Sequence record: MK250017.1
Direction: 5' to 3' (one strand)
DNA length: 64,000 nt
Shown here: piece after piece, positions 5,891 to 62,931 of the stretch
Position numbering within the stretch: position 1 is the stretch's first letter
Layout: each line of letters starts with the position of its first letter
Translations under genes and position numbers: made by a program
The notes under the pieces: generated by a model
Seen by the model: only the letters and a program-made list of their open reading frames with translations
The model's database searches: none
What the model was told of the DNA's origin: nothing

Positions 5891-6425
5891 ATGAATATAA
5901 TATTTTTAATATTTGAAAAAATCTACCTTCAAAAAAGAAAGAAATNNNNNNNNNNNNNNNNNNNNNNNNNNNNNNNNNNNNNNNNNNNNNNNNNNNNNNN
6001 NNNNNNNNNNNNNNNNNNNNNNNNNNNNNNNNNNNNNNNNNNNNNNNNNNNNNNNNNNNNNNNNNNNNNNNNNNNNNNNNNNNNNNNNNNNNNNNNNNNN
6101 NNNNNNNNTGTTTTACCAAAAAGTCTACATTTATCTTAATTATTTTTTAATCGGATTAAAAATAATTTATAACTAATTAATAATCAATAATTTAAATAAA
6201 TTAATTTTCATATAAATTAATATAAAATAAAAATTCAGATCTAAATTACTTAAATTTAAATCTGAATTTTTAACTAATATAAAAAATTAAATATTATATA
6301 TAAATATCTATCTCAANNNNNNNNNNNNNNNNNNNNNNNNNNNNCAAGTTTCAAGAAAAAGTCTATTTTTTTACAAAATATTTTTAATAAACACTAAAAA
6401 TAATTTATAACTAATTGATATATAA

Positions 6426-10903: not shown

Positions 10904-11602
10904 TTATTTTCTACGAATTGCTCTAATTGGTAATGATGATAACATATCATATATAGTTATACCAATATTATTTGCATTTAATATTTTATATCCATAATTA
11001 AAATCATATCCGTCATACTCAGTAGAACTCCAGAAACATGCATCTGTTTTATCCTGTACTTTTTTTCCTTTAACAAAACCTGTTGAAGGAATAATTATGA
11101 ATTTATTAGGATTTTTTAATGATGAAACTTTAAATGCAATACCATTTCTTCCTACTCGTATTTGTGATACATCTGTATTATTAATTAATTCTTCAATATC
11201 TTTTTTAGAAGGTATATCCCAACTGGTTCCTAATATAAATTCAGGAACTGAATTATATTTTATTGTTTTATTTTTTAAACGACTATATAATAACTCTACA
11301 TAAGAATCCCAGTTAATACCAGCTGCACTATCTAGTGAAATTTTATCTAATGTAAATCCTTTTCGTCTAAAATAACCTCCTGTTTTTGTTGGTCTAGTTG
11401 CTCCGATATTTCTATCACACCATAAGTTTCCTGATGGTAAATCTAAATCAACAGCTTCATATTCAATTTTATCTTTTCCTATAGTTACACCTGTTACTTT
11501 TTCGGCAAATACCGTATCTATGGAATCTTTATCTGATGCTAAAATATTATCAGTTTCTTCATCAAATAAAGATTCCATAAGTATTTTTATATTTTTATTC
11601 AT
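10904..11602 (-). CDS. DUF1566/Lcl-like domain protein with LMES propeptide
   Basis: VDLDLPSGNLWCDRNIGA, WDIPSKKDIEEL, FWSSTE motifs; AATAAATA at 11626-11633. Confidence 0.6.
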   Translation of the reverse strand: MNKNIKILMESLFDEETDNILASDKDSIDTVFAEKVTGVTIGKDKIEYEAVDLDLPSGNLWCDRNIGATRPTKTGGYFRRKGFTLDKISLDSAAGINWDSYVELLYSRLKNKTIKYNSVPEFILGTSWDIPSKKDIEELINNTDVSQIRVGRNGIAFKVSSLKNPNKFIIIPSTGFVKGKKVQDKTDACFWSSTEYDGYDFNYGYKILNANNIGITIYDMLSSLPIRAIRRK

Positions 11603-15200: not shown

Positions 15201-16955
15201 TTAAATATTATCATAAGTTTGTTCAAGAATCTTTGCATAATCCATATGGTAACCAAGTGGATGTTCTGATTCTTGTACAGGTTTCATAATAGGTTTCTGT
15301 GCAACTTTATAACGACGAACGAATTCTTCATTCATTACTCGCTGTGCTTCTCTGGTACGAAGACCAGTTTTCTCCCAGAATTCATCTACATCTTGTTTAT
15401 TTTCAAGAACCCAGTAACGAGCCATATTTTCAATAGCATCCTGCTCTTGAAGTGGTGCTTTTGTATAAAGTTCAATATCTTTAGGATCTGCTAATCTTAA
15501 CCAGTTTTTGAGAACACGCTTTTCTGCAAGTAGAGGAACATTCCATTGATTGTTAATATCTTCTATCTTATAGATATTATGTTCAACTACATATTTCATA
15601 CACTTCTTTTTCTGTGTAGGTTTAAGAGCTGCAAATTTAGCAAAATTTTCAGGAGATAATGAAATAGAGAATGGATAACGTGAAACAATTTGTTCTTTAA
15701 TACTTTCTTTCTTTTCAAGATTGTCAAGAAGATCCTGAAATTCTTCCATATCTTTTTCAGTTTCTGCTGCAATTCTTTCTGCTTTTTCTGTAGATGTTTT
15801 TGAGTCTTCATCAGCAGGCGCTGCCTCATCTGCCTCATCATTTGCAGTATCTGTATCGGAAACATCTTCTGAATCATCTGACTTATCTGCATCGCCATCA
15901 TCAGCTTTATCTTCATCTGACTGTCCTTCAATGTCGATAATATCCGCACGTTTTTCATCTTTATCATCACTGTCTTCATCAGATGATTCGCCATCAGCAT
16001 CTTCTGATGTAATATCAAGAATTAAGGCACGTTTCTTCTGTTTCTCTTCATCTGTTGGTTCTGACTTATTAGTATCTGTAGATGTATTTGTATCATTATC
16101 TTTATTATCATCCGATTTATCATCTTTATTATCACTATCAGATGATGAATTATCTGCACCATCAGGTGTTACATCAGCTTCAGGTAATTTGAATTCTTCT
16201 TCATCTTCCTCAAGTAATGGCTTAGATAAATCTTTTAGGTTAACAGGCTTGTTTTTCATTTCCATACATTTTTCATTAATTGGCGCTTCTTGCTCTAATT
16301 CATTAACAGTAACGCCTTCCATAAGAACTTTATATTTCTTATTAGTTGTTTCTTTCTGTGATTTTTGAGCAGAAACAGATTCATTAAGATATGACATAGT
16401 ATTTACACCAAGTGATTCATTGATTCTATCAAGACGTGCTTCTGCAAAACCTGGTGTACATACAATATCATAAGTGAATATTTGAGCGATTTCAACTTCA
16501 TGTGTTTTTTCATCTACATCACCTGCTGCACGAGAAGATACAAATAAAGGATAACCAGCTTCAACTAATTCCTGTGCGATTTTACCGTTTGGTGTATCAA
16601 GGATTTCAAGTTTTCCCATTACATTATGATTCTCCTGATCATACCAAAGATCTGTAATTTTATGAGAGGCTTCTTTTAATTGAATATCAAAACGTCCTTC
16701 AGGATGATCTAATTCACCAAGAATTGAACCACTTTGTTTAATCATTTCACGTAAATATCCAAGATGACGTAAAACTTCCTTTTCCGGATAACTTCTATTG
16801 TTTCTGTTAATTACAACATGTCCAGGTACAGAGCATGCAGTAAAAACACCAGAGAATATATATTTCTTATTATTTGGTGTACTGTCAAAGGCTTCATTAA
16901 GAGTAAGAGGCTGCAATGACTTACTTTTTATCATTAATTTACTATTCTTTGTCAT
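15201..16955 (-). CDS. Prohead protease (T4 gp21-like) fused to an acidic scaffold-like region
   Basis: NRNNRSYP, LGELDHP, VSSRAAG, YDIVCTPGFAEA motifs; long D/E-rich linker; AATAAATA at 16982 and 16999. Confidence 0.85.
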   Translation of the reverse strand: MTKNSKLMIKSKSLQPLTLNEAFDSTPNNKKYIFSGVFTACSVPGHVVINRNNRSYPEKEVLRHLGYLREMIKQSGSILGELDHPEGRFDIQLKEASHKITDLWYDQENHNVMGKLEILDTPNGKIAQELVEAGYPLFVSSRAAGDVDEKTHEVEIAQIFTYDIVCTPGFAEARLDRINESLGVNTMSYLNESVSAQKSQKETTNKKYKVLMEGVTVNELEQEAPINEKCMEMKNKPVNLKDLSKPLLEEDEEEFKLPEADVTPDGADNSSSDSDNKDDKSDDNKDNDTNTSTDTNKSEPTDEEKQKKRALILDITSEDADGESSDEDSDDKDEKRADIIDIEGQSDEDKADDGDADKSDDSEDVSDTDTANDEADEAAPADEDSKTSTEKAERIAAETEKDMEEFQDLLDNLEKKESIKEQIVSRYPFSISLSPENFAKFAALKPTQKKKCMKYVVEHNIYKIEDINNQWNVPLLAEKRVLKNWLRLADPKDIELYTKAPLQEQDAIENMARYWVLENKQDVDEFWEKTGLRTREAQRVMNEEFVRRYKVAQKPIMKPVQESEHPLGYHMDYAKILEQTYDNI

Positions 16956-17050: not shown

Positions 17051-17752
17051 ATGAATAAAAATATAAAACATTTATTAGAATATATTGTTAACGAAGAAAA
17101 TATACAATTAACTAATAAATTGAATAATAATGGTGATTTTCTAAATAATATTATAACTTATTTTAAAACAAATTTCAAGCCTCAAATTTTAGTAAATATT
17201 AAAATAAAAGATGAAAACATTAAAAATAATGATTTTTATAAAGCAGTAATGATAAATATCGCGAGTTAGTTAATAGAATATTATGTCGCGAATTTTATGC
17301 TTAATATGTTTAAATCTAAATTTAAATTTAATGGTAATTTAATTTTTGATGAAGATAAAGATGATGAAAATAATAAAATTACTATTAAAAGAGGTAGAGT
17401 TCATGATTTTATAGTATAGTTTAAAAATGATGATAAGGATGATTTTTATAATTAGCCATTTGAAATTAAATCATATAATAAAGAATTCGGTAATATTACA
17501 TTAACAGATAATCAAAGAAAAATAAGTAATATAGGAACGCCTATTTATGTTTTATGCAATTATGATTTAAACGATAATGCAATAATTATTACAGATATTG
17601 ATTTAGTATTAGGAAGTAACTTATTAAGTTACTTATTAAGTAAGTCACTATTTAATAATGATAAGGCAGGTTCAAGACATATCAGTAAAGATGTAGGAAG
17701 AATTAATATATATAAAAGAGAATAGGAATAGTTAAATTCTTCAACTAAATAA
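17051..17752 (+). CDS. Hypothetical protein (TAG=Gln), possible PD-(D/E)XK nuclease fold
   Basis: Open for 233 aa with 5 TAG; HDFIV..FEIKS; AATAAATA at 17022. Confidence 0.7.
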
Positions 17753-20380: not shown

Positions 20381-21766
20381 TTAATTTTGTTTAATTTTAT
20401 TAATCTCATTATTAATGTTTAACAAGAATTTCTTAAATTCATTGATATTCCATCCTGTATATGAATTAAACTCTTCATATTTAATATCTAACGATAATAA
20501 TTCTCGTTTAATATAATATTCTATATTAGTATTATCTACAATTTCTTTTATATCGTATAAGTCATTAACAACTTTATTTTTTATAAGAATTTTCATTGGT
20601 GGAAATCCGTCTCCTTTGTTAACATTATCTTCTGAAACTTCTGAACATATATCATATAATAATTCAAATTCACTGTATGTTAATACATCTATTGTTAATA
20701 AATCTTCATTTTGATATGTATCTGGATCCTATCCTTCTAATGTGATAATATCTTCTAAATCCATAAAATAATCATCATCTGTTAAATGATTAATTGCATC
20801 AATATCGATGTTTACTCTATATATTTTAGGATAATAATGGTTATCCCCACCATCACCATATTCAAATTCACCTACATCAAACTGTTCTGTACTTCTATCA
20901 AATCCAAGTTTTAAGAAATCCCATTCATCCAATACTCTTGCAGATTTATGTTCTTTCTATGTTTTTGTACCTGTATCATACAGATCAAAATAACCGTTTT
21001 TAAATGAACGTAAATCAATTAATGATAAATCCTAATTAAATGATGTACAACCATATAGTAAATAACTTATATCCATATTTTTTGTTATATTCCATTTCTA
21101 TATAGGCTAATTGAATTTTCTACAATTATAAAACATATATGATAAATTTTCAGCACTAGATATATCCCAATTACTTATATCCTAATTAAATGATGAACAC
21201 CCATAAAACATAGAATCAAATCTTGTAACTTTACTTACATTCCAATTACTAATATTGCTGTTGAACGTTGAACATTCATAAAACATATTTACCATTGATG
21301 TTACTTTAGATGTATCCCATTTACTTAAATCACAAATATCTTTACATCCGTTAAATGTACCAACCATGGATGTTACATGTGATGTATCCCAATCTGAAAC
21401 ATTCCAAAATATATACTGCCTGTTAAATGTACCAACATTAAATAATTGGTCTAACATGGTAACATTAGAAATATCAAGCCAATTTAAATTAAAAGCATCT
21501 ACCTTATCTTTATATAATTGTTTTTTTATATCTGCTATTATATGAACCAATTCACTAAAATCTTTTACTTTATATTTAAATGCATCCTAACATACTAATT
21601 CTAAATCATCATCAGATACAACCATGCCTTTTAATAATTGTTCATGTATTTTTTTAGCATCATCTTCTAATAAATCATTAGTCATACCTATGTTATCATC
21701 ATTAAATAATTCATCATCGTCATCATCAAATAACGATTCTAATAATTTATTTATTTCTTTAATCAT
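20381..21766 (-). CDS. BspA/DUF285 repeat protein (TAG=Gln)
   Basis: Three track ORFs join in frame; repeats WDTSxVTSMxxMF and FNQDISNW, with Q encoded by TAG. Confidence 0.85.
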
Positions 21767-22256: not shown

Positions 22257-23507
22257 ATGAAAAAAACAACAAAAACTGTAAATAGTATGAGAAGTCAGAA
22301 AGCACTTTATAATGCTATTATGGAATCAGTAACTCCTCAGATTGCTAGATTAGTAAAAGAAGCAGAGGAAGCAGATGATGAAGACAAAGCATCTGATGAT
22401 GTAAAGGATGCAGAGAAAAATGAATCAAACGATGTTGATGAAGCAGCACTTAATGAACTTTTTGGTTTTGGTTCATCTGTACAGAAACCAGAGAAAGCAT
22501 TATCTCTTGAAAATTCTGATGATGAAAATGCAGATTTATTTATTGCATGGTGTGCATACTATATGTCTAAATGTAGTAATGACGCAAAGAAAGGAATGGA
22601 TGCATTTTTTAAAGCTTCTGGTGATGTTATTAAGAAAGCACCTATGATGATTGTAAAAGGTATTCTTAAGTTAATGTCAGGTGCAATTAAAGGTTCTGTA
22701 TTTGGTGTAAGTACAGTTGCAGCTGTTGTTCTTGGTAGTATCTCTATGTTGGTACGTTTAACAGTTTCAGGTGTAGAGAAAGCAAAGGAAGCACTTTCGC
22801 AATTATATAAGACTATTAGTCAGGGTATTACTACATTCTATAAGAATTTTACTGGTGGTGCAGAAAAAATGGCAAATGATTCATCAGATAAATTAACTGT
22901 ATGGGTTGGTGTTATTTCTGGTGCACTTATGGCATGTGCAAATAAGGTTCAAGGTGCAGTTGAAACATTAGGTAATTTCTTTAAACAAGTTCTTGCAGAT
23001 GCAAAGGCAAAGAAAGATGGAGCTGTTCTTCTTGTAAAGACATGGTTACAGGCAAAATCAGACGCAGTTAAATCATGGATTACTGAAACAGGTGGTGAGA
23101 TTCGTAAGACTGTTATTGAAGCATGGAATGCAATGGATAAGAAAGTTCGTAATGCATATGATAAAGTTGCAAAGAAACTTGAAGACTGGATGAATGATAT
23201 TAAGGAATTAGTTCAGGAAATAGGTACAAAAATTTCTGATGCTGCTGATAAAGCAAAGGATGTTGTTATTGATAAGAAAGATAAGGCCCTTGTATGGGGT
23301 ATTCAGAAAGGTGTTAAGGGACTTTCAAAGAATTATACAGAAGATCAGGTTGTAGCACTTGTTCGTAAATGTTATAATGAGTCTGTTGTACCTAATACAA
23401 GAACTGGTAATATTGTTATCAATGAAGCATATTTACATGCAAAAGGTACTAGAGCACGTGTACTTTATGAAAGAAAACAAGCACGTCGTGGAAAACTTTT
23501 AAAATGA
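22257..23507 (+). CDS. Helical amphipathic putative virion protein
   Basis: ALYNAIMES motif, hydrophobic central helices, apolipoprotein-like periodicity; AATAAATA at 22181. Confidence 0.7.
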   Translation: MKKTTKTVNSMRSQKALYNAIMESVTPQIARLVKEAEEADDEDKASDDVKDAEKNESNDVDEAALNELFGFGSSVQKPEKALSLENSDDENADLFIAWCAYYMSKCSNDAKKGMDAFFKASGDVIKKAPMMIVKGILKLMSGAIKGSVFGVSTVAAVVLGSISMLVRLTVSGVEKAKEALSQLYKTISQGITTFYKNFTGGAEKMANDSSDKLTVWVGVISGALMACANKVQGAVETLGNFFKQVLADAKAKKDGAVLLVKTWLQAKSDAVKSWITETGGEIRKTVIEAWNAMDKKVRNAYDKVAKKLEDWMNDIKELVQEIGTKISDAADKAKDVVIDKKDKALVWGIQKGVKGLSKNYTEDQVVALVRKCYNESVVPNTRTGNIVINEAYLHAKGTRARVLYERKQARRGKLLK

Positions 23508-28364: not shown

Positions 28365-29378
28365 TTATGCTTGTTTTTTATTTAATGCATAAAAATAATT
28401 CTTTAATTCAGAAAATGAAAAGAATTCTAAATAATTTAAACCATGTTTTTCTGCTATTTCTCTTTTCATAATATCTCTAGTTGTCCAAACATTAATAGCT
28501 GAAATATAATAATCTTTTTCTTTCGATCTCTTTTTCCATAAATTTAATTTCTTAATGTCGTCGGGATTATTTTTATCAAAACCATGTTTACCATGTGTCC
28601 AATGAAAATTACATTCAATATATAAATCATTATCTGCAATATAAAAATCACAAGCAAAAGGATATTCTTCTGATTTATATTGTCTTTTAATATCAGTATA
28701 TATTGTTTTTAAAAGTTCATATACTTTATCTTCTTCCTTTGAACATGTATGTGTTTTATGTTTCGTTTTAGATTCATGTATTTTGTCTATTGTTGATTGT
28801 AATTGTGTAGTNNNNNNNNNNNNNNNNNNNNNNNNNNNNNNNNCTTTTCTTTTTTCTTTTATAACTTCACATTTACCAACATTATCAACACCATACTTTT
28901 CTAGTACAGTTTCTTTACGTTTTTCCTTTACATAGTCACTAGCTAATGCCATTTCAGTACCATAACGTTCTAAATTCGTGGCTTTAATTTTATCCCATAC
29001 TTTCTATGATTTTGCAGGATTATCTACACCATAACGTTCAATATTTGTTTTCTTTATCTTTTCTTTAACACTTTCTAATTGAAATGGATTTGCAACTCCA
29101 TATTTTTTAATCATAGATTGCTTTTTCAGACCATATATACATTTAGAATTACCACAACTTTTGTGATATTTATAACCGTCACGTTTACATGGTTTTCCAC
29201 AAATATGACATCTTGGTACATCATTAGTATCATTTAATATACATAACAGTTTATCGATAATATCCATATCAGATTTATCGATAAACTGTGTATTTAAATA
29301 TTCAATAATATTAACAGGTATCTTATTTTTATTTAATGAATGCTCCTTATAATACTATTTTATATATTCATTATTCAT
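28365..29378 (-). CDS. Putative free-standing homing endonuclease (Zn ribbon, KYGV repeats, Vsr/PD-(D/E)XK-like C-terminus; TAG=Gln)
   Basis: Two track ORFs join through TAG; CHICG..CGNSKC, RYGVDNP repeats, CDFYI..IECNFHWTHG; contains an N gap. Confidence 0.7.
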
Positions 29379-35615: not shown

Positions 35616-36992
35616 CTTAGAAATATTGCTTTATATGTTCATAAATATTATCAGTAAATAACTCAGAAGAATATGTTGTATATTTCCTAATATTTTTATA
35701 TTCCTATAAAATTTGTTGTTCTATACAAAATGCAGTATAAAGTTCATATTGTTTATAATATAATATCTCTATATCTAATACAATACTAGAATTACGCAAT
35801 GCAGATGAACGTAATGAACGTATTCTCTACTTTGGTGTTTCTTTTTTTGTTATACCTATTTTATAAAGTATTTGGTTATTTGTTTTATCAATAACTTTTA
35901 AATAATATAATATTCCTATATGTGATTTTTGTTCAGGATGATTATTAAACCAATCTATATTATATCCACCTGGTACATATCCATTTAATATAGTTCTTTC
36001 TATTTTACATTTAGGACATTCCTAACCTGCATTTAGAAATTTAGAAATTCTTTTTTCAAAAATCCCATGTTTTGGACAAATAATCTAAATTTTAGATTGT
36101 TTTGTTTTATAAATGTCTCTATTGCTTTCTGGATATGTATAATAATCGCCATATTTTTCTTTACACATACCAATAATCTAATCATATGTAAATGATTTAT
36201 GTAATGCTCTCATTTTATTACCACATAATGGACAACCATTTTTATTGCCGTTTATTATATGTGTACGAGCTAATACATTAAAAGCACCATGTATAGGACA
36301 GATAACCGTTATTTCTGAATTTACTAATCCGGTCCAGTTATCTAAATTATATGTAAATTTATTATTATATTTTTTATTAGCTATTTCTAAAAATTCTTCT
36401 TTTGTTATTCTGGATTCAATTTGAGCTTTTTTATTTGCTAATGTTCCCTTGTATGTTTTATCTTTATATTTCTATGCACACATTGGACATCCAAATTTAT
36501 TTCTTAAATGATCCATCGGGCGTTGCCAGAATGTTCCATGTTCTGGACAAATTATTTCAACTGGAGTTCGCATAGTTATATATTTTACTTTACTATAATC
36601 AAACTTATTATTGAATAATTTTTCACCTCTATTTATGAAACTTTGTTTATAAAACTCATTTCCACGGACTATTTCTTCACCCTCATCATTACATGCTAGG
36701 GGCAAGGCGCTTCCACCATTATTGGAATCTAATGGCGTACTCCCCGAAGGGATAGTCTCTGAACCTTCCTAATGAGTAGTCAATTCATTAGGCTTGGCTG
36801 CAGATTCTTGTACTATATTTTCTATTAAATTATCTGACATCTAAAAAGTATTTTTATGTTTCATTTTATTTATCGTGATAATAAAATATAAAATATGAAT
36901 ATACACATTCCTGCAATTCACCTTGTTATTCAATGCCACTTACGCAGCAAGGGAGCCATTTTTACAATCTGCCTCAACAGCAGTGTACGCTA
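35616..36992 (-). mobile_element. Group I intron in NAMPT
   Basis: Exon 1 ends in U and the intron ends in G; P AATTGCAGGAA, Q AATCTGCAGC, R TCAGAGACTA, S AAGAAATAGTCC; IGS AAAATG-G-CTC (36953-36962) pairs both exons. Confidence 0.92.
35617..36840 (-). CDS. Intron-encoded endonuclease (three CPxHG..CPxC Zn-ribbon repeats + YKIGIT GIY-YIG-like domain; TAG=Gln)
   Basis: Frame open from ATG 36840 (or 36864) to TAA next to the 3' splice site. Confidence 0.8.
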
Positions 36993-38238
36993 ACCCAATT
37001 CCCAAAATCAAATTAGTAGCAGCAAACATCTTATCTTCAAGTTGCGCATAAATCATTCTTTGACGTTTCATATTGATAGAATCACCATAAAGAAGTCCAA
37101 TATGTGTATCAAGTACTTTATATCCCTTCTTATTAAATGTTCCACCAAATGTATTCCAAAGAAATTCATATGAACCCATCTTTACAAATTGATCATTTGC
37201 TTCTGAATCACCACAAATAATCTTTACAGGATCACCACTATCAGGACGGATAACTACTCGACCATTTCGACTCATAATCTGTTCCTTATACTTAGGTACG
37301 ATCTTTGTAATAAAATACCAGTAATCATAGCCGTCTGCTACAATAGAAATAATACCATCAGGAAATTCATCAAGCATTCTCTTAAAATAAATTTCATCAT
37401 CTGGAATACCAGAATCATTTGTTGCATTTGAACATTCCACTGAATGTTCTGTTGCAGGTACTGTAGCTGCAATTAATTCTTTCTTAGGATCTGCTTTATA
37501 ATAGTATTCAATCATTTTAATTGCAGGTACTGATTCAGAACCGCAAAATGATGTAAGATGTGCCATGCCTGAAGTGATTGTAGTTTCAAGAGAACTCATA
37601 CCTCTCATTGAAAAATCATGACACAAGAAATCAAGGTTAGACAAATCATTAGGATTATAAAAACCTGTTTTCATTGCATGTCTAACAAGTTCACGTCTAT
37701 AAACATCTGAAATTGTAGCGGATGTCATTGGTTGCCACAAAATATTTGAAAGAATAGACTCCAAATAATTAGTAAGCCAAGCAAAATCAGGATGTGTGTT
37801 TGTGATTGTCAAAACAGGACATCCGATTGGACAATATGAACCTTCAGGAAGTGCCTTAATTCTAATAGGGAGATAACCAAGCTTATGCAAAGCAATAATA
37901 TGATCTACTCCTACTTTCTTTGCAACTGCTTCACCAAGAAATGATGTAGTTAAATCAGTATATGTTTTTCTAACAGTATCTTCATCAAGGTTAAAGAAGA
38001 AATTATTAAACGTATTAATAAGATACTTCTTGATAAAATACTGAATACCAAATACAACTACACCTTCATTTGCCTCTGGGAGGTACTTATTTCCTCGTGG
38101 TGTAAAATTACTAAAAAGTTGTGTCATTCCCTTAGGATACATACAGTGATGACCAAGCTTGTAGCCATCAGTCATAAGCATTGCATTGAGAAGTATGTCT
38201 TCTACCATTACATGCTGAGAATCTTTTACGTTTGTCAT
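36993..38238 (-). CDS. nadV: Nicotinamide phosphoribosyltransferase, exon 1
   Basis: TDGYKLGH, HDFSMRG, VPATEHSV, IRPDSGDP, YGDSI motifs. Confidence 0.92.
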
Positions 38239-38309: not shown

Positions 38310-38338
38310 TTTATATATTATGTTAACTTTAAAGTCTA
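38310..38338 (-). promoter_or_regulatory. Sigma-70-type promoter TAGACT-N17-TATAAA
   Basis: -35 at 38333-38338, -10 at 38310-38315; upstream of NAMPT. Confidence 0.6.
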
Positions 38339-39889: not shown

Positions 39890-39897
39890 CAAAGATA
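39890..39897 (-). promoter_or_regulatory. Bacteroidetes-type -7 promoter element
   Basis: TATCTTTG upstream of 39863. Confidence 0.75.
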
Positions 39898-39968
39898 CAT
39901 ATTTTATTCTAAATAAAAAAGAGAGATACTAAAATATAAAGTATCTCTCTTAAAATTATTATTAATTA

Positions 39969-40985
39969 TTACATGATATATTGTAAAAGCATTCTTGTTT
40001 CTTCATCTTGTCCGAGTTTTTTATTAGCCTCTCTCAAAATCTAATTAACTCGTGTTTCTGTCATATTGTTTTCTTCTGCAATTTGCCAGGTATTTTTCTC
40101 AGGACGACCATTAATAGCATAGCATGCACAAACAATTTCACCATTTCTTTTACCCATAACTCTCTTGATATTATCTTCAAGTTCTCTTGTTAAATCTTCA
40201 TTTTCAAGACTACTTCCAGGCTCATTGAAAACATTATTTGTTGTCATATCACCTAATGTTACTTTAGAATCTCCATCATCTCCAACAGATTGATCTAAAC
40301 TATTTGCACGAGCATTTGCTTTCATCGTCTATACAAATGAATCATAAGTTAAATTAGGATGTTTCTTAACTAATACATCATAAATATCATCAATATCAGG
40401 TTCATAACCATTCTTATTAAATAAACGTTCTTTTACACGAGCAGCTTCACGAGCAATACTACCCATATTACGAGGAACTGCCATATGACCACCTACTTCA
40501 TCAACTGCCATCATAATCTCACGACGAATATACCAAATAGCATATGATACAAATTTTACATCTTTTTCTGGTGTACTTGGATCATATGTTTCAGCTGCTT
40601 TCATAAGTCCAATATTACCATATTGAATTAAATCTTCTTTAGGAATATTAAGATTTTTATACTTATTAACAACAGTAACAACAAACGGAAGATTTGCAGA
40701 AACTAATTTATTTTTTGCTGCCTCTACCTATCTCTTATTTGACGAATGCTGAATAATATCTGCAAGTTTGCATTCATCTTCATGTGTTAATCTTTGTTTC
40801 TTATTAATTGCTTTTAAATATGCTACAAATGATTTTGCTGTATTTTCATCCTATGTAATAGTAAAATCATCATGTAAATCCATATGCATTCCATTATTAT
40901 CTTCATTAAGAGTATTTCGTAATGAACGAGAAATACCTTCCATAAGGCTATTATACAATGCTTTCTTTTTATTAATTACTCTCAT
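39969..40985 (-). CDS. RpoD-like sigma-70 factor with N-terminal extension (TAG=Gln, 4 TAG)
   Basis: Region 1.2 YLKAINK..LTHEDE; region 2 LVSANLPFVV..DLIQYGNIGLMKAAETYDP..KFVSYAIWYIRREI; region 4 TETRVNQIL; 338 aa. Confidence 0.9.
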
Positions 40986-41040
40986 ATTTTATTTAATAAA
41001 TTAATTTCAATAATTTATTATATTTATCAATATATAAAAA

Positions 41041-41069
41041 TAGAGAATAGTTATCCCAACTATTCTCTA
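41041..41069 (-). terminator. Intrinsic terminator insulating the sigma-70 gene from the upstream early operon
   Basis: 12-bp stem tagagaatagtt/aactattctcta with a T tract on the minus strand. Confidence 0.7.
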
Positions 41070-41076
41070 TTATAAT

Positions 41077-41637
41077 TTAGTTATCCTATACAATATTTAA
41101 TATATGTTTAATCTTTTCTATATCATTATCTGTTATCCCTGTATAATTATCAATGTGCACAAAATTATTCATTTGTTTGTCTAACATATCTTTATCATCA
41201 TCTATAATACAATACTCTATATTTAAATCATCACTATTAAAAAAATTTATATCATATAATACAATATTATATGTTTGCGCACTTTTATCTAATACAATCG
41301 TTAAAAAATCATCAATTTCTTTTCCACGTGGTATATTATCTAAATTTATATAATTTGGTGTTATTCCGACTATATATTTGTTTAAGGGTTTTAAATCTTT
41401 GTATCGTTCAAATTCATGTTTTGTTGCATCTAATGTAAATAGTCTCCAAGATGATGATATAACTAATCTTACATTATACTTTTCACAAAGTTCTTTTATT
41501 CTATAAACTGCTTTTTTATCGATAAAAATATCACCACTATTTTTTATATATTCTTTTCCTTCATCATTCTCTGTACACCATATTGCATATTCTTCTGAAT
41601 TCAAAACACCATCTATATCTAAAAATAAAAGTTTCAT
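41077..41637 (-). CDS. HAD-family protein (Swiss-Army-knife RNA repair HAD type)
   Basis: LFLDIDGVLN, VISSSWR, RGKEI, IIDDD; one TAG 3 codons before TAA. Confidence 0.75.
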
Positions 41638-43652: not shown

Positions 43653-44870
43653 ATGAAAAAGAATAATTATCTATATGAAGAAATGATACAGGATATTTCT
43701 GTTATCGTTAAACATCGAATAAATGAAGCATATGATAATCAACTTCTTGAAGAATATGGTGCAAAAGATATATTTAATGATGTAATGAAAGAAGCTACAA
43801 AAGATGGAAAAATCTTTTATACACATCTTAAAAAATTTATTATTTATGTTATCAAAAAACTTCAAGAAACAAATCAATATAAGCAAGCAGAAAAAATGAT
43901 GAATGCATATGTTCAGAAAATATAGAAATATATAAATGAACATAAAAAGATTACACCTCGTCGTATGTTAAAAATTACAGTTACTGTATTAGCAATATAT
44001 GGCGGTGTATCAATGGTATAGGATTGTAAATCACTAATAAAATCACTACAAAATAATGTAGAAACATATGAGCAAACAGCAGAAGATATTCCAGATTTAC
44101 AATAGGAAAATATTACTGTTGATGAACCAGAAAATTTTGTAGTCAATGTAAAGGATGAAGCAAAATAGACATTAAGTGTTAAACATGTTTCATAGGAAGA
44201 TATTAATAATTCTCCTGCAAATAAATTCGAACATGATAAGAATTTCAATTTTAAATCAAGTAACAGTGCACGTGAATTTATTAAAAAACATGAAATGCTT
44301 CTACTTTATCCTTATTATGCAAATGAAGCTGAAGAAAAACAAGGTAAAGTAACTATAGGTTATGGACATGTTGTATTAGAAACTGATGGTGCATTATATC
44401 AGCAAATACAACAATTAAAAAAGAAAGGTCTTATAAAGCAGTCATTTACTCGTGATAAGAAAACAGGAAAACTTATATTAAATCCTAAACATTGTAAACC
44501 AATTATTACAAAAGTGCAAGCAAATAAATTATTCTTAAAAGATATTAAGATAGCAGAAGATAGAGCATATAAAGCATTGCAAGATATGCCTACTGATGAT
44601 GATAATGTTAAGTGCTATATGTTATATAATCAAAAAATAAGAGATGGATTAACATCACTATGTTATAATGCTGGTAATCTTAAACATGATAAGTATTCAT
44701 TTATAACAAAAGGACTTGCAAAATGTAGATATGATTATAAAAACCAGAAAATTAATCCAGGTGATTATAATGTATCATTCAGTTATTTTAAAAATATTAA
44801 AGATAATCCTAATAGAAGAAATGAAGAATATAAGTTATTCTTTATGAATGCAAATAAATCAATGTCATAA
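43653..44870 (+). CDS. Lysozyme (GH24/T4L-like) with N-terminal propeptide-like segment and TM helix (TAG=Gln, 5 TAG)
   Basis: FIKKHE..VTIGYGH..DGLTSLCYNAG..RRNEE; 405 aa; AATAAATA at 43617. Confidence 0.85.
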
Positions 44871-44891: not shown

Positions 44892-46175
44892 ATGAAGAAA
44901 TTATTTGAAGCAAAACAAAAACCATTAGTTGTTTATAATCCTGCTGATATATTTATGAAATATAATATGAAACCAGGAGATTATGTTTCTATTGCATATA
45001 TATCAGACGTTTTACAAGGTGAATCAAGCCATCCTATTGCAAGAAGTGGTTCTCAAAAACAATGTTATAATATTAATGATGAAACAGATGCATAGTTAAT
45101 GGAATATATTGACAACCTTCCTAATAATAGAATTAAACAATTATTAACAGAATTTAGAGAATCTAAGAAATATTAGGATTTTTTAAATGGTACCAGTAAA
45201 TTAAAAACATGTAAATTAAATTTAACGACAGAACATATTATTAAAGTAAGTCATCTTACATGTAACTGGAAAGATTCAAAAGCATTGGCAAAATTCTATG
45301 ATAAGTAGCGAGATGCTATTTGGAAACTCCGTCAAGATTATGGATTTGAAGATGGTTTTGATGATAATTATGATAGAGATGAAGATGATGTAAACTGGAG
45401 AGATTCACATGATGGTAGAAATATAATGCCTCGTACAAAAAAGAATTATAACGGTAATGTATATAAAGATGCTACTATCCTTCCTGGCATTTATGCAAGT
45501 CTTTCAGATCCTGATAAAGTTGCATTTAGATTCGCATATAATCAAAGATCTAGTCATAAAGATTCTGATTATTATTATGTAAATGGTGATGGAACATTAT
45601 TTCCTTTAAATAAAGCATTCGTTACATTCTTAACATATGCATATAAGAAAAATAAAGAAGATGAAATTTATCCTACATAGGAAGAAAGAGAATTTGTTGC
45701 TAAACTTAAACAAATTACTGATGAAGCAGCAAGTACAGCAGAAATGACTCTTAGCTGTAATTAGATTTTATTTATGAAGTCAACTGCACGCACATCAAAG
45801 AACGCAAGAATTTCTCAAAATATTCCATTTGTATGGATTAATACAAAAGCAGTTGTCAATAAATATGATTTTATTAATCCAACTGAATTAAATAACATTA
45901 TTAAAAATCTTGTGTATTCACTTGATGATACTGATGTTAATGGTACAATTGAAAATATCAATGTTAAAGGTAAATCAATAAGTGATCTTCTTAATATAGA
46001 TATGTCTGGTAAAGCAACTGCTGATCCTGCAACTATTAGACAACGTTTAGGAATTACAGAAGCATTACATATGTTAGCATATAAATTTACACAAACAAAA
46101 AAGAAACGTGCATTATATGAATCAATTATGAAAAATGTTTCTAAAACAATAAAAAGAAAATTACAATTAATCTAA
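44892..46175 (+). CDS. Putative virion protein (TAG=Gln, 5 TAG)
   Basis: Three track ORFs join; MKKLFEA start, RALYESIM C-terminal motif. Confidence 0.8.
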
Positions 46176-46232: not shown

Positions 46233-47486
46233 TTAAAATCTAATAAATGAAACTACTTTTGCAGAAACATTAGGATCTGCAATTTTGAATACCTTATCAG
46301 GATTAACCTATAACATGATATTTGCATCACCTTTATCTGCAACAGAAGATGTCCAATATCTACCGGTACCGATAATATCCATTACTTTATTAAGTTCTGG
46401 TAATGTAGGAAGATATGCACGTTCAAAAATTTGTGATTTTACTTCATTAACTTGTTCACTATTCAAACCATTTAATTGTAATTTCTTTATAGCCATTTGC
46501 TTTGCAAGTTTAGCAGCATTATTACCATTATCTTCAAGAATACTTGTATAAAAATTTCCTTTAATTTCCTCTTGATAATAATAATTAGATCCTGGTGTAA
46601 TCTCTAATTTCTATTTAGCACCAACTAGCTTTTTCTTAAAATAATATGAATCATATACATTATTATTTCCTGGATTACCCAATGTTGATTCCTATGAATC
46701 CAATATCATAAATACTGGTTTCTTATCTAATGACTAATAACTAGAAATAACACATTTAGCAAATGATCCCTATGCATCATTACTTAAAACTAAACCATCT
46801 ACTTCATCCCATTTAAGGAACATACCTTCATTTGCTTTTTTCAAAAAATTACCTACTGTTTTAAAATATGGTTTTAAATCTGCATATTTTTCACCAAATG
46901 GTTCATCTTCTGCAATTTCATCCTCTATATCTTCATCATTTGAATCTGATGTATCTACATCATCATAATCAGGATAATCTGTCTATGTAGTTTCTTCAGG
47001 TTCATCAACCTTTTTACTTACACTATCATCAAACCCATGTGAAACTATAGGTTTATCCTAAATAACTGGTTCATCTTCTATTGTATTATCATCTGTTTGC
47101 ACATCATCATAATCAGGATAATCAGGAGTCTATACTGGTTCATCCTAAGAAATATTACCATCGAATTCACCACCATTTTCAACATATAATTTCTGAATAT
47201 CTGCTATACTACCACCAGCATCTATATATGCATTACCAATATTCTTATATGCTTTTAATTTATTAATATCTGAATTATTATGTGGACATCCAACCTTCAT
47301 AGTAAGCAAACCTGCAACATATTTCTATAAAAGAACCTCTTTTGTATCTTTCTTCATTACCTTTGCATCTTCACCTAATGTTGAACGCAAACGACTTGAC
47401 ATTGAACTCATTGAAGCCCAAATTTTTGGATCAATTGTTCTCTATACACGGGCTTCATTTAATATATCATTTATAAATGTTCTCAT
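46233..47486 (-). CDS. Putative virion protein with acidic DYPDYDDV repeats and a DUF1566-like C-terminus (TAG=Gln, ~11 TAG)
   Basis: 417 aa open frame; ILNEA start; LPTLPELN..YWTSS; AATAAATA at 47514. Confidence 0.8.
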
Positions 47487-47616: not shown

Positions 47617-48246
47617 TTATAAAATTGTTGTCCATGCTTCAAATACTGCATCATCATATTCTTCATAAGGAATAGTAATATATCCATGATCTGCCCATGA
47701 TGTTCCCCATGAATTTCTAATAATAAATCCTTGCTTATTATAGCCAACGCATAATACACAATGCCCTCCGGCATAATTAGAACCTTTTCTCCAAAAATAT
47801 GGATCATTATCTGTAAAAACAGGAAAACCCATAGAAACTGGGCCAAACATAATTAATGCACGTTTTAAAACTTCTCCTGATGGAACTAAAGCATATGAAT
47901 TAATTTTTTCACCATTTAAACCATTAGTTTTAAGATATTTTAATGCTTCTTTTATAGACATACCTTCCTATGGTTTATTTGAACGAGAATTATATAATGT
48001 ATTAATAGAGAAATTATTACATTTACCATCAGTTCCTACTTTACTGTTATGAAGATAGTCAAGTACACCAGTTAATGATTGACATACACAAGTCTATGTA
48101 TTACCCTAATCACGAACAGGAGGCATAACATCTCTTAAAGAAAATTCATCAGGTAATGGTATTTTTGAATCAACATTTACTACTTGTTCTGTACCATCTA
48201 ATTTAGACGGAATACATCCATAAAAATGTTTCTACTTATTATCCAT
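47617..48246 (-). CDS. Papain-like C1A cysteine protease (TAG=Gln)
   Basis: PVRDQGNTQTC (oxyanion Q = TAG), GGHCV, IRNSWG; 209 aa. Confidence 0.9.
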
Positions 48247-50230: not shown

Positions 50231-50351
50231 TATTATGCTTTTATTTAGTTTTTATATTTATTATATATAAAAATAGGTAATATGTTTATGAAAAATACAT
50301 ATTACCTATCAAACAAAATTAAACAATTAAATATATATATTATGAAAAATG

Positions 50352-50744
50352 TGGAGACATCCGGAGTCGAACCGGAGTATTACTAACTTGTCAATAATAA
50401 ACTATCTACGTGCGTATTTCTTAATTAGTTTTCATCATACATTCTTAGGAGTTAAACAGTTTAATGTCGTAATCACTCTTATTGGACAAAAAGTATAGTG
50501 AGTTTTATTTAACAGAGAAAACACTCACCGAACTCCGTGGCGATGCTCAACTTACCTTGTAAGGAGCAAATGCTTCAATGGGTTTATATTACCAATCCTA
50601 CCGGATTAAGCTGCCATACGAAAATCAATTTCGTCGTCATTTAAATTTATTTGCTAAATTTCTTTGTATTACTACAAAAGGCTTTTAACTTTCCTACACG
50701 ATTTATTACCACATAATTAATAAGCAAAACCAAAAAATGTCCCC
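50352..50744 (-). ncRNA. ssrA: tmRNA
   Basis: 5' GGGGACA pairs 3' TGTCTCC (G3.U70); T arm CCGG-TTCGACT-CCGG; tag frame DDEIDFRMAA* at 50606-50638. Confidence 0.92.
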
Positions 50745-52614: not shown

Positions 52615-52652
52615 AATTGTAAAAAATTAAAAATATTACTAATGTCATGTCG

Positions 52653-52724
52653 TTGGGGATCCGAGACTCGAACTCGGCCTAAGAGTTTTAGAGACTCCTG
52701 TACTGACCACTATACTAATCCCCA
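52653..52724 (-). tRNA. Amber suppressor tRNA (anticodon CTA), Gln-like
   Basis: TGGGGAT/ATCCCCA (U1-A72, G2-C71, G3-C70); loop CT-CTA-AA; canonical T arm. Confidence 0.92.
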
Positions 52725-52754
52725 ATACTATATTTTAATTTACATAACTATTAA

Positions 52755-53525
52755 TTATTCTATATAATCGCTTAATTTCTATTTGTAATGATAATATGTT
52801 GATTTACATACATTATATTTAGTTAAAAAATCTGATTCTGATATATTATTTACAATATCATTCTTCATATCTACTGTTAATTTACTGCAGCCATTAGAAT
52901 TAAATAACTATATTTTCTAATTATATTTAGATATTTTCTACATTAATTCTTGTTTATCACGTGATAATATATATCGTTTTTTAACTAAAAGATTACTGAC
53001 ACTACCTCTTGTAAAATTAACATTCATATCACGTTTTAATTGTTGTAATGATGTAGATGAAACAATATTCTTTGTATTTACATCATAACAATATATTGTA
53101 TGCCTTCCATCATTCTATTTTTCATATGATTTTTTCTAAACTATTAATTTCTATTCATCTGTGAATTTATATCCATCAATACCACCATCACCACCTTTTG
53201 TTTGATTATAACCAGTAGCTCCATAACTATTATATTTACGAATATACTATTTTTCTAATAGATCTAATTGTTGTTTTATATCAGACGTGATATAATTATC
53301 AAATGTTTTTAATATATATAATGAAAAGGAATCTATACCATATTTCTTAAATGCTTTATATATTGGCGCATTATATCTATTATTAACAGAATTATTAATA
53401 TGATGTAATAATCTTTTATGTAGATTTATACTCTAACCAATATAACACTTTTTATTTATATCATTCTAAATCATATAAATACCCGGACACTATGGTATAT
53501 TATTTATAATATCATCTTTACTCAT
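52755..53525 (-). CDS. GIY-YIG homing endonuclease, Seg-like (TAG=Gln, ~11 TAG)
   Basis: Absent from the track; GIYMI..YIGQSINL..R..LEKQYI..GYNQTKGG; 256 aa. Confidence 0.9.
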
Positions 53526-53557
53526 AATAATTTTTAATATTTAATAACCATATTTTG

Positions 53558-53631
53558 TAGCCCCACTCAGATTCGAACTGAGTCAGCGAAAGTTAGAGTT
53601 TCGAATGCTTAAACCATTACATCATAGGGCA
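53558..53631 (-). tRNA. Second amber suppressor tRNA (anticodon CTA), Gln-like
   Basis: TGCCCTA/TGGGGCT (U1.U72 mismatch); CGAAA-CTCTAAC-TTTCG; CTCAG-TTCGAAT-CTGAG. Confidence 0.92.
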
Positions 53632-61394: not shown

Positions 61395-61781
61395 TTAAAA
61401 TGAATGTATATTATTATCAAGACTTGTCATTTCAGATGCTTTAAATTTACCATAAATCTTATTCCATCCTTTTGATAAACCGTTACATAACATACTGGTA
61501 TAATATGCAAATGGATTACTAAATCGTTCTGGATCAAAGCTTCGCCAATACATTGCAACATCCAACATTGCTGTCTGTATACAATCTTCCTTATCCTCTT
61601 GACATTTATAATGTTTCTTTTTTGCTAAATTTTCAGCAATTAACTAAAGCATGACAACAGCATTATATGTAAGTTCATCTCTCTATTTTGAAAGAACTAT
61701 TTCTTTCATCAACTCTTTATTCTACACATATGGTTTTCCACCTTTAGTTTTAATACCTTCTACTTTACTAAAATCTTCCAT
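61395..61781 (-). CDS. Late-transcription sigma factor, T4 gp55-like (TAG=Gln, 3 TAG)
   Basis: Absent from the track; PYVQNKEL (cf. HYVNNKEL), LIAENL, FDPERFSNPFAYYT (cf. FDETKYKNPHAYIT); 128 aa. Confidence 0.85.
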
Positions 61782-61809
61782 GGTTTTTAAATAAAAATAG
61801 CTATTTCTT

Positions 61810-61838
61810 ATTTTACTAAGAAATAGCTAAAAAGTTTT
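61810..61838 (-). promoter_or_regulatory. Degenerate sigma-70-type promoter AAAACT-N17-TAAAAT
   Basis: About 30 nt upstream of the gp55-like ATG. Confidence 0.4.
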
Positions 61839-61845
61839 AATAAAT

Positions 61846-62931
61846 TCATTTATTAATTGCTTCCAAATGTTCTTTTTCATTAGGTGTTAAATTATCAGGA
61901 ATCAAATAATGTACGCATACAAAATAATCTCCTCTTTGATTCATATCAGGTCGTTTAAGACCTTCACCAGATAATCGCATAACTGTACCTTCTTTAATAC
62001 AACTCTGCAACTTTATTGTTTTTGATACACCAGAAGGTATATTAACTGTATATGAACAACCAAGTAATAGTTTATAATAAGGTACATGAATATGCTCTAT
62101 TACATTCAAACCATCAACTTGATATTTGTTTGTATCAAATTTATAATCAGCTATAGCAATAAAATTACCATTCTGCCCAACTGATTTCTTTGATTCTGAT
62201 CCTTTACCACTATATACTTTATATTCACCATTCTGAATGCCTGTATTAAATTCAATTTCAATCTTTACTTCTTGCTTTTCAAATCCAGAACCACCACAAT
62301 GATTACATTTATTTTCTACATAAAAACCTGTTCCATGACATAATGGACAAATTTCTTCTTGAATTGAAAATGTTCCTCTTCCTATAAGAGACTGGTGAAT
62401 AATTTTTCCTGCACCATGACACTTTGGACATGTTTTCTGTCCAGTTCCACCAGCACCATGACATGACGGACAACGTACATCTCTCTTATATTTAACAACC
62501 TTCTTAATACCATTAAATATATCTTCAATAGTAACAGGAATTTTCATTTGAATATCTCTGCCTGGTTGAACTTGATTTCTCTGTTGTTTAGCACCTCCAA
62601 AACCGCTAAATCCTCCAAATGGATTAAATCCTCCAAATGGATCAAAACCCGATCCACCAAATGGATCAAAACCTGAACCACCAAATGGATTTTGCTGACC
62701 ATTTTCATCACCATATGTATCATAATTCTGTTTCTTCTGTGGATCACTCAATACTTCATATGCATGATTCACATCCTTAAATTTCTCTTCAGCTTCTTTT
62801 ACTTCAGATGGTGATTTACCTTTCTGCATATCAGGATGATATTTCTTTGAAAGTTTTCTATATGCTGTCTTTAAGTCTTTCTCATTACAATCTCTAGAAA
62901 CACCTAAAATTTCGTATAAGTCTTTTGCCAT
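61846..62931 (-). CDS. dnaJ: Chaperone DnaJ
   Basis: J domain HPD, G/F region, CxxCxGxG repeats. Confidence 0.95.
   Translation of the reverse strand: MAKDLYEILGVSRDCNEKDLKTAYRKLSKKYHPDMQKGKSPSEVKEAEEKFKDVNHAYEVLSDPQKKQNYDTYGDENGQQNPFGGSGFDPFGGSGFDPFGGFNPFGGFSGFGGAKQQRNQVQPGRDIQMKIPVTIEDIFNGIKKVVKYKRDVRCPSCHGAGGTGQKTCPKCHGAGKIIHQSLIGRGTFSIQEEICPLCHGTGFYVENKCNHCGGSGFEKQEVKIEIEFNTGIQNGEYKVYSGKGSESKKSVGQNGNFIAIADYKFDTNKYQVDGLNVIEHIHVPYYKLLLGCSYTVNIPSGVSKTIKLQSCIKEGTVMRLSGEGLKRPDMNQRGDYFVCVHYLIPDNLTPNEKEHLEAINK

Follow-up and report, generated by a model that had tools for sequence, protein, structure and literature searches.

A Lak megaphage, a giant gut phage, encodes an RpoD-like sigma factor that appears to be made late in infection and that carries the same N-terminal leader, predicted to be cleavable, as about a dozen other late proteins, leading us to the tentative hypothesis that this sigma factor is loaded into the capsid, trimmed by the prohead protease and delivered into the next cell with the phage DNA. 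The first-pass annotation of this locus, which described a full sigma-70 factor with about 45 extra N-terminal residues resembling the terminal motif of two putative head proteins, four TAG codons, its own late-type promoter and a terminator separating it from an early operon, holds as an observation and is stronger than originally stated. Its interpretation, that the sigma factor cannot be made at the start of infection although its likely promoters drive genes that are needed early, and that capsid loading, maturation by the prohead protease and injection with the DNA are the simplest explanation, is only partly supported, as several of its premises are weakened by the available data.

The window analyzed here is a 64-kb stretch of DNA (MK250017.1; 25.7% G+C) that is 99.9–100% identical to Prevotella phage Lak-A1 (MK250015, positions 172678–236677, same strand), a phage that reads TAG as Gln. 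Indeed, 230 of 600 long ORFs in the whole Lak-A1 genome require TAG to be read as an amino acid, and two tRNA genes with anticodon CUA lie in the window (table 1). Genome-wide analyses used Lak-A1 and the divergent Lak-B1; the two stretches that are N in the window (5946–6344 and 28812–28843) were masked in the working copy of Lak-A1 and were not read.

With TAG read as Gln, the sigma ORF is a single 338-codon frame. Pfam detects Sigma70_r2 at residues 94–159 (47.7 bits against a cut-off of 24) and Sigma70_r3 (28.3 bits against 25.3), whereas Sigma70_r4 falls below its cut-off (16 bits against 24.1); however, solved RpoD, RpoS and SigA chains in the PDB align from residue 47–55 through region 4.2 to residue 331–337, with the stretch KFVSYAIWYIRRE aligning to KFSTYATWWIRQA of RpoD. 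The start of these alignments places region 1.2 ahead of region 2, and Pfam Sigma70_r1_2 is on record for the ortholog P0131. Nothing aligns to residues 1–46. The nearest leaderless relatives are proteins of 287–295 residues that start 10–20 residues before region 1.2, and the phage protein is therefore an ordinary compact RpoD-like sigma plus an N-terminal addition. Possession of regions 3 and 4 distinguishes it from ECF sigmas and from small T4 gp55-type late sigmas with region 2 only, and only sigma domains were found, with no catalytic polymerase domain as in virion RNA polymerases. An AlphaFold model built on 12 orthologs predicts one helix at residues 3–29, an unstructured stretch at residues 30–46 and then the sigma domains, although confidence in the N-terminal 60 residues is low.

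The N-terminal addition is a shared leader (residues about 7–28; KKALYxSxM...LNE) found on 12–14 otherwise unrelated proteins per Lak genome. Sigma residues 2–32 were aligned locally to the first 45 residues of 600 Lak-A ORFs and gave more than ten hits at or above the 99.9th percentile of controls (2563 internal segments and 3000 shuffled N-termini), with the top five beating every control. The resemblance to the proteins at 22257 and 43653 is hence not due to chance; however, these two proteins are not shown to be head proteins, as the first-pass annotation had suggested, with one being a tape-measure-like protein with hydrophobic segments and the other containing a lysozyme domain. A profile built from seven copies converges on 13 Lak-A and 15 Lak-B proteins (i-E-values from 1e-14 to 6e-6), with the consensus KKALYESIMKxVSKTIKRKLNE. 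All but two C-terminal copies lie at an annotated or inferred N-terminus, and all of these N-terminal copies end in hydrophobic-x-Glu, mostly (L/I)NE, which is the cleavage motif of T4-type prohead proteases. In the C-terminal copy at 44892–46175 the closing Asn-Glu is replaced by Gln-Leu-Ile and a stop, an arrangement that is kept in Lak-B. The carriers are mostly unannotated (Pfam and PHROGs gave almost nothing for ten carriers outside the window), but include small acidic proteins of 96–204 residues and a TAG-rich paralog family of 417–539 residues in addition to the lysozyme-domain and tape-measure-like proteins, and several of these look like ejected proteins.

Selection on the leader acts on the peptide rather than on a DNA cassette, as leader copies differ at many synonymous sites and an identical residue uses the identical codon in only 60% of cases (third-position identity 0.47 against amino-acid identity of 0.43). 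The leader is nonetheless no more conserved than the protein bodies between Lak-A and Lak-B (0.69 against 0.65), and its constraint shows only as convergence on one consensus across paralogs and distant orthologs. The hydrophobic moment of the leader exceeds that of shuffled sequences only weakly (fraction 0.02–0.5), and we make no claim that it forms an amphipathic helix.

Table 1. Coordinates of the sigma locus and associated features in the 64-kb window.
Position	Strand	Feature	Description
39969..40985	-	Sigma gene	338 codons plus TAA; in-frame TAG (read as Gln) at codons 45 (40851-40853), 86 (40728-40730), 219 (40329-40331) and 315 (40041-40043)
40902..40985	-	Leader, residues 1-28	M..KKALYNSLMEGISRSLRNTLNE; predicted prohead-protease cut after Glu28; L10, Y11, N27 and E28 invariant in 12 orthologs down to 33% identity
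40848..40901	-	Linker, residues 29-46	DNNGMHMDLHDDFTITQD; nearly invariant between Lak-A and Lak-B, starting DNNGMHMDLH in Lak-A and ANNGMHMDLH in Lak-B; modelled without regular structure; would be the N-terminus of the mature protein
39972..40847	-	Sigma body, residues 47-338	Regions 1.2, 2, 3 and 4; nearest cellular-type relatives are sigmas of about 287 aa that end in LxxYL
41021..41028	-	Late-type promoter box	GATAAATA, 35 nt before the ATG; conserved in Lak-A2, C1, B1, B2 and B5; same variant used by the capsid protein gene
41039..41071	-	Intrinsic terminator	15-bp stem plus T-run; ends the upstream host-promoter operon 42698-41077
39913..39951	-	Terminator after the sigma gene	12-bp stem plus U-run; z = -3.7
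39890..39897	-	Host-type promoter of the next, TAG-free gene	TATCTTTG (Bacteroidota sigma-A -7 box); marks the return to early-type transcription
15201..16955	-	Prohead protease	584 aa; T4 gp21-like (Peptidase_S77) domain fused to a long acidic, scaffold-like tail; no TAG; late box; N-terminus contains LTLNE followed by A
22257..23507	+	Leader-bearing protein	Leader at residues 14-36, ending LVKE then A; followed by an acidic stretch, hydrophobic segments and a tape-measure-like coil; no TAG
43653..44870	+	Leader-bearing protein	..YLYEEMIQDISVIVKHRINE then A; one hydrophobic segment and a T4-lysozyme-like domain; late box at -28
44892..46175	+	Protein with the motif at its C-terminus	..KRALYESIMKNVSKTIKRKLQLI, then stop; lacks the closing Glu; conserved in Lak-B
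46233..47486	-	TAG-rich late protein with a short leader	MRTFINDILNE then A; paralog of longer leader-bearing proteins elsewhere in the genome
48335..50230	-	T4-type portal gene	Late box at -24; 10 TAG codons; reference late structural gene
61395..61880	-	Small sigma with region 2 only	128-161 aa, gp55-like in size; 4 TAG codons; candidate reader of the late box; in the DnaJ operon behind a TAGACT-N17-TATAAA promoter at about 63097
38310..38338	-	Example of the sigma-70-like promoter class	TAGACT-N17-TATAAA, ahead of the NAMPT gene 36940-38238; other copies start at about 4993, 28334, 43589 (before tRNA-Lys) and 63097
52652..53631	-	Two tRNA genes with anticodon CUA	52652-52724 and 53557-53631; read TAG

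An unbiased count of 8-mers in the 100 nt preceding ORFs returned three promoter signals. The first, TATCTTTG, is the Bacteroidota sigma-A -7 box (TAnnTTTG) and precedes about 45 genes at about 36 nt, with only 1.7% of their Gln codons being TAG. The second, RATAAATA, resembles the T4 late box TATAAATA and precedes 102–110 genes at 26–28 nt with a tight spread; 77–79% of these genes contain TAG, and they include the portal and prohead protease genes, whereas the capsid gene carries GATAAATA further upstream (about 53 nt before its ATG). That this box is the late promoter is itself inferred from its presence before the portal, protease and capsid genes and from TAG enrichment. The third is a bipartite, sigma-70-like promoter (WARACW-N17-TATAAW), in which the hexamers lying exactly 17 nt before TATAA(T/A) are TAGACT, TAGACA, TAAACT, AAGACT, AAAACT and TAAACA; TAGACT occurs 20 times at spacer 17 and 0–3 times at any other spacer, confirming the TAGACT promoters proposed by the first-pass annotation. 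This class precedes about 70 genes, including NAMPT, Hsp70, DnaJ, the gene for an ECF-like sigma and genes whose N-termini resemble nucleotide-metabolism enzymes, and it lies upstream of several tRNAs.

Genes that encode the leader are also genes behind the late box. Of the 28 leader genes, 25 have xATAAATA within 70 nt of the ATG (23 of them at 21–35 nt), against a baseline of 22–24% of all genes (P about 2e-13). The three exceptions are the two genes with C-terminal copies, which are second in a late operon, and the 22257 gene, whose boxes lie at -68 and -81. The sigma gene itself is a single-gene unit, flanked by the two terminators and insulated from the upstream operon, which has a host-type TATCTTTG promoter. 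The same layout is present in Lak-A2, C1, B1, B2 and B5 although the flanking sequence has diverged. TAG content, by contrast, is not conserved, with four codons in clades A and C (one at a different codon in C1), none in B1 and B5 and one in B2. Contigs from gut RNA libraries cover the sigma ORF but give no starts, strand or timing, and depth steps at the terminator are not used as evidence here.

Several observations link the leader to head maturation. The protease encoded in the window belongs to the T4 gp21 family (Peptidase_S77, 57.6 bits), and its protease domain has homologs in 2046 phage records. The gp23-like capsid protein of Lak-A1 has AKLNE64 followed by D where gp23 of the T4-type phage RB68 has FLTE65 followed by AEIGGDHGY, which is the maturation cut. 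The T4 arrangement is also visible directly in RB68, in which three unrelated small internal proteins start with MKTY[QK]EF[IA][TK]E. The internal proteins of T-even phages share only a capsid targeting sequence (CTS) (PMC3012670), and gp21 removes the N-terminal propeptides of gp23, gp24, Alt and the internal proteins, with the CTS being sufficient to load foreign proteins (PMC5694885). The Lak leader follows the same logic but has no detectable sequence similarity to the T4 CTS or core proteins: the leader profile scores at noise level against RB68 gp20, gp21, gp22, gp24, gp67 and gp68, and gp18, gp19 and gp23 did not reach the reporting threshold. A look-alike between the leader and the N-terminus of T4-type gp67 was rejected, as it scored -1.4 with the leader profile and 628 of 2000 shuffles (31%) did as well. 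The resemblance is therefore functional and not membership by descent. The Lak leader probably needs its own scaffold. A complex prediction of sigma residues 1–44 with the full protease-scaffold protein returned a score of 0.00, which is no evidence either way.

The leader is conserved in distant sigma orthologs. A search of 50%-identity cluster representatives found orthologs at 50%, 34% and 32% identity, all of which start with the leader, with L10, Y11, N27 and E28 invariant across 12 sequences and conservative substitutions elsewhere. Their contigs show a late box 27–30 nt before the ATG, two or three TAG codons, terminator insulation and further leader proteins nearby, one of which is a GNAT acetyltransferase with a leader-like start next to the sigma gene. 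A relative of similar distance that lacks the leader has no TAG and a TTTG...TACTTTTG host-type promoter. In IMG/VR, six Lak loci have both leader and late box, whereas 49 other phage RpoD-like sigmas start 10–20 residues before region 1.2 with no leader, and nearly all have no TAG. The Lak clade also differs in DNA-contact stretches, with WYIRR in region 2.4 instead of WWIRQ and TE(T/V)R(V/I)NQI in region 4.2 instead of TRERVRQI.

We hypothesize that the sigma factor is made as a precursor, the first 28 residues of which are the phage's common leader for late proteins destined for the prohead. The T4-type prohead protease would remove this leader after Leu-Asn-Glu28, and the mature 310-residue sigma would stay in the filled head and enter the next cell with the DNA, where it could bind host core RNA polymerase and open the sigma-70-like promoters, which the Bacteroidota host sigma (which uses TTTG / TAnnTTTG boxes) is not expected to read. 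The sigma fold assignment, the leader family and its link to late promoters, the protease gene and the matching motif in the capsid protein are established by our analysis, whereas packaging, cleavage, injection, core polymerase binding and promoter-specific initiation are inferred from sequence and by analogy, as no Lak phage is cultured and no virion proteome was found for any of them. We consider it more likely than not that the leader targets proteins to the prohead and is cleaved, slightly more likely than not that the sigma is present in virions, and possible, but somewhat less likely than not, that it is injected and acts early on this promoter class; the hypothesis as a whole remains tentative, although capsid loading is the best single explanation for the leader.

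The core inference of the first-pass annotation, that this is a late-made sigma carrying a head-type leader, is well supported. The argument that early transcription depends on this sigma is weaker than first proposed. The claim that it cannot be made early rested partly on TAG codons that are absent or nearly so in Lak-B, such that translation timing is not fixed by recoding and only the promoter argument survives. The roughly 45 genes with host-type promoters are early genes, so the host enzyme can start the infection without an injected sigma, and genes behind the sigma-70-like promoters use TAG at an intermediate rate (0.18, against 0.02 for host-type and 0.33 for late), fitting a middle class better than an immediate-early one. 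Additionally, Lak encodes two more sigmas: the small gp55-like sigma (table 1) and a TAG-free ECF-like sigma whose operon has a host-type promoter and whose gene has its own TAGACA-N17-TATAAA promoter. A conventional cascade without packaging is therefore possible, running from host sigma to ECF-like sigma, the sigma-70-like class, the gp55-like sigma and finally the late class. Against this, a TATAAT -10 with a 17-bp spacer is the signature of sigmas with regions 1.2 to 4 and not of ECF sigmas, and the RpoD-like sigma would have no promoter class of its own in such a cascade; conversely, the AAC/GAC -35 and the promoter in front of the ECF-like gene favor the ECF-like sigma. The contact residues did not settle the matter, and we only modestly favor the RpoD-like sigma as the reader of this class.

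Of the alternative explanations, the one that survives best, although we consider it unlikely, is that the protein is an ordinary late or middle sigma that directs host polymerase to one phage promoter class during the same infection, with the leader serving another shared need of late proteins, such as a chaperone handle, a stability tag or an oligomerization tag. Group 2 jumbo phages, which include Lak, encode minimal and RpoD-like sigmas that are thought to redirect host polymerase (PMC7824862), the phage encodes DnaK and DnaJ homologs in the window, and the Lak-B orthologs, with 0–1 TAG, could also be translated from any read-through transcript. However, this explanation does not account for why the tag always ends in the protease motif when N-terminal and lacks it when C-terminal, why a sigma shares it with lysozyme-like and tape-measure-like proteins, or why leader, late box and gene insulation are co-conserved down to 32% identity.

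Less likely still is that the sigma acts late in the cell that makes it, with the leader being a pro-sequence that keeps it inactive, or parked on the assembling head core, until removed by the prohead protease. This would couple a last wave of transcription to head assembly, much as the pro-sequences of Bacillus sigma-E and sigma-K, removed by morphogenesis-linked proteases, couple sigma activity to spore morphogenesis. The late promoter and a leader of about 28 residues ending at a protease motif are consistent with this view, and the position of the gp55-like sigma behind a sigma-70-like promoter makes a positive loop between the two sigmas possible. The same leader, however, sits on about a dozen nonregulatory proteins and is therefore a general targeting signal rather than a sigma-specific inhibitor, and T4-type prohead proteases act inside the prohead (PMC5694885), so a cleaved sigma would be inside the shell. 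That the shared N-terminus is merely a by-product of a duplicated late promoter and 5' region spread by recombination is very unlikely, as, although leader genes share a promoter box at a fixed distance, their upstream regions differ apart from the 8-nt box, codons for identical residues differ in 40% of cases, a copy exists at a C-terminus and substitutions are conservative.

[quoted passage not shown] The Lak leader is longer (23–28 residues, against about 10 in T4), is unrelated in sequence, has one C-terminal copy and would carry a sigma factor, a cargo not known for T4 or any other phage. Virion-packaged RNA polymerases (N4 vRNAP, the phiKZ, SPN3US and AR9 virion RNAPs, and those of crAss-like phages) are likewise made late, packed in the particle and injected to transcribe genes that the host enzyme cannot read, but those phages carry a catalytic polymerase, whereas here only a specificity subunit would be carried and host core enzyme would still be needed. 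Pro-sigma-E and pro-sigma-K of Bacillus subtilis, considered here only as a functional analogy, are sigma-70-family proteins with N-terminal pro-sequences of about 20–29 residues, but involve a different protease class (SpoIIGA or SpoIVFB-type) in a cellular system, and the Lak leader is not sigma-specific. Finally, RpoD-like sigmas of other phages have the same domain set (regions 1.2–4), and Iyer et al. 2021 place Lak-B8 in jumbo-phage group 2, whose members all encode sigma factors, some of them RpoD-like (PMC7824862). No paper that we found describes a virion-borne sigma; the 2021 comparative study and a 2026 review say only that RNAP-less jumbo phages encode sigmas that presumably redirect host polymerase (PMC7824862; PMC13282480), and the Lak papers mention sigma factors only in passing.

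If the hypothesis is correct, Lak would be the first phage known to carry a sigma factor in its particle, a "portable sigma" strategy lying between T4 Alt and the virion RNA polymerases and a third route to host-independent promoter choice, beside injected polymerases and injected polymerase modifiers. Host core polymerase could then at once read about 70 phage promoters, which would also explain how a phage of Bacteroidota, whose own sigma reads unusual promoters, can use classical -35/-10 promoters. Independently of the sigma, the leader provides a sequence rule for predicting which of the hundreds of unannotated Lak proteins are head-internal or ejected proteins, and the three promoter classes give a first temporal map of an uncultivated 540-kb phage. 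This map shows that TAG content alone does not define timing, as the protease has 0 TAG, the capsid protein has 2 and the sigma of Lak-B1 and B5 has 0.

Beside the genes for head assembly, the window encodes a second protease in the head gene neighborhood: a papain-family (Peptidase_C1) cysteine protease gene with a late box and four TAG codons lies directly beside the portal gene. The prohead protease itself is fused to a tail of about 380 residues, roughly 200 of which are almost pure Asp/Glu/Ser/Lys and are followed by a helical C-terminal domain, and it may represent a protease–scaffold fusion. This protein has no TAG in 584 codons although it belongs to the late genes. Indeed, across the whole Lak-A1 genome TAG use is a poor clock for single genes, as the capsid protein has only 2 TAG in 662 codons, whereas some mobile-element-like genes behind sigma-70-like promoters have 14–17.

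A second, shorter N-terminal pattern, M(I/N)K(E/N)I(N/K)xL(L/M)E, recurs in three proteins of the window and is followed in two of the three by SLFD and acidic residues. It also ends in hydrophobic-x-Glu and may be a short form of the leader; one of the three proteins, encoded at 20381-21766, carries DUF285 repeats. In a distant Lak-like phage (sequence L063), the gene after the sigma gene encodes a GNAT acetyltransferase with a leader-like N-terminus (profile E-value 1e-4), raising the possibility that a second host-modifying enzyme uses the same route.

A third sigma encoded in the Lak-A1 record is ECF-like (r2 plus r4_2), with an acidic N-terminal extension of about 110 residues and no TAG, and sits behind both a host-type promoter and a sigma-70-like promoter. 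The Lak-A1 record also contains a repeat of about ten copies, each consisting of a near-perfect TAGACT-N17-TATAAT promoter followed by the conserved sequence GTTAGTATTTAAGGTTGAGATAGAT. These copies occur in pairs 200–280 nt apart with no ORF close downstream, and may constitute a family of small RNAs.

Positions of the additional features, in window coordinates unless another record is named; L-numbers other than L063 denote pieces of the Lak-A1 record, and the repeat pairs listed are examples
Feature	Record	Position	Strand
Second, shorter N-terminal pattern	window	10904-11602	-
Prohead protease with acidic tail	window	15201-16955	-
Second, shorter N-terminal pattern	window	17051-17752	+
Second, shorter N-terminal pattern (DUF285 repeats)	window	20381-21766	-
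HAD-domain gene upstream of the sigma	window	41077-41637	-
Papain-family cysteine protease	window	47617-48246	-
tmRNA	window	50349-50744	-
TAGACT-N17-TATTAA match	window	about 50870	
Two tRNA-CUA genes and the nuclease ORF between them	window	52652-53631	-
GIY-YIG nuclease ORF	window	52755-53525	
ECF-like third sigma	Lak-A1 (= L017:18376-19326)	298376-299326	-
Promoter-like repeat pair	L007	7846 and 8125	
Promoter-like repeat pair	L015	11377 and 11571	
Promoter-like repeat pair	L018	2602 and 2796	
Promoter-like repeat pair	L023	9326 and 9571	
Promoter-like repeat pair	L029	16293 and 16559	
GNAT acetyltransferase, distant Lak-like phage	L063	11096-11593	+

Among the RNA genes of the window, Rfam identifies a tmRNA gene (54 bits against a gathering score of 47) that was not reported by ARAGORN; the match to TAGACT-N17-TATTAA lies about 100 nt upstream of it. 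The two TAG-reading tRNA-CUA genes flank the GIY-YIG nuclease ORF, which contains 11 TAG codons and hence depends on the tRNAs beside it. The gene upstream of the sigma encodes a HAD domain of the "Swiss Army Knife" RNA-repair type (PF18143), and under the standard code it would end 9 nt earlier, at a TAG.
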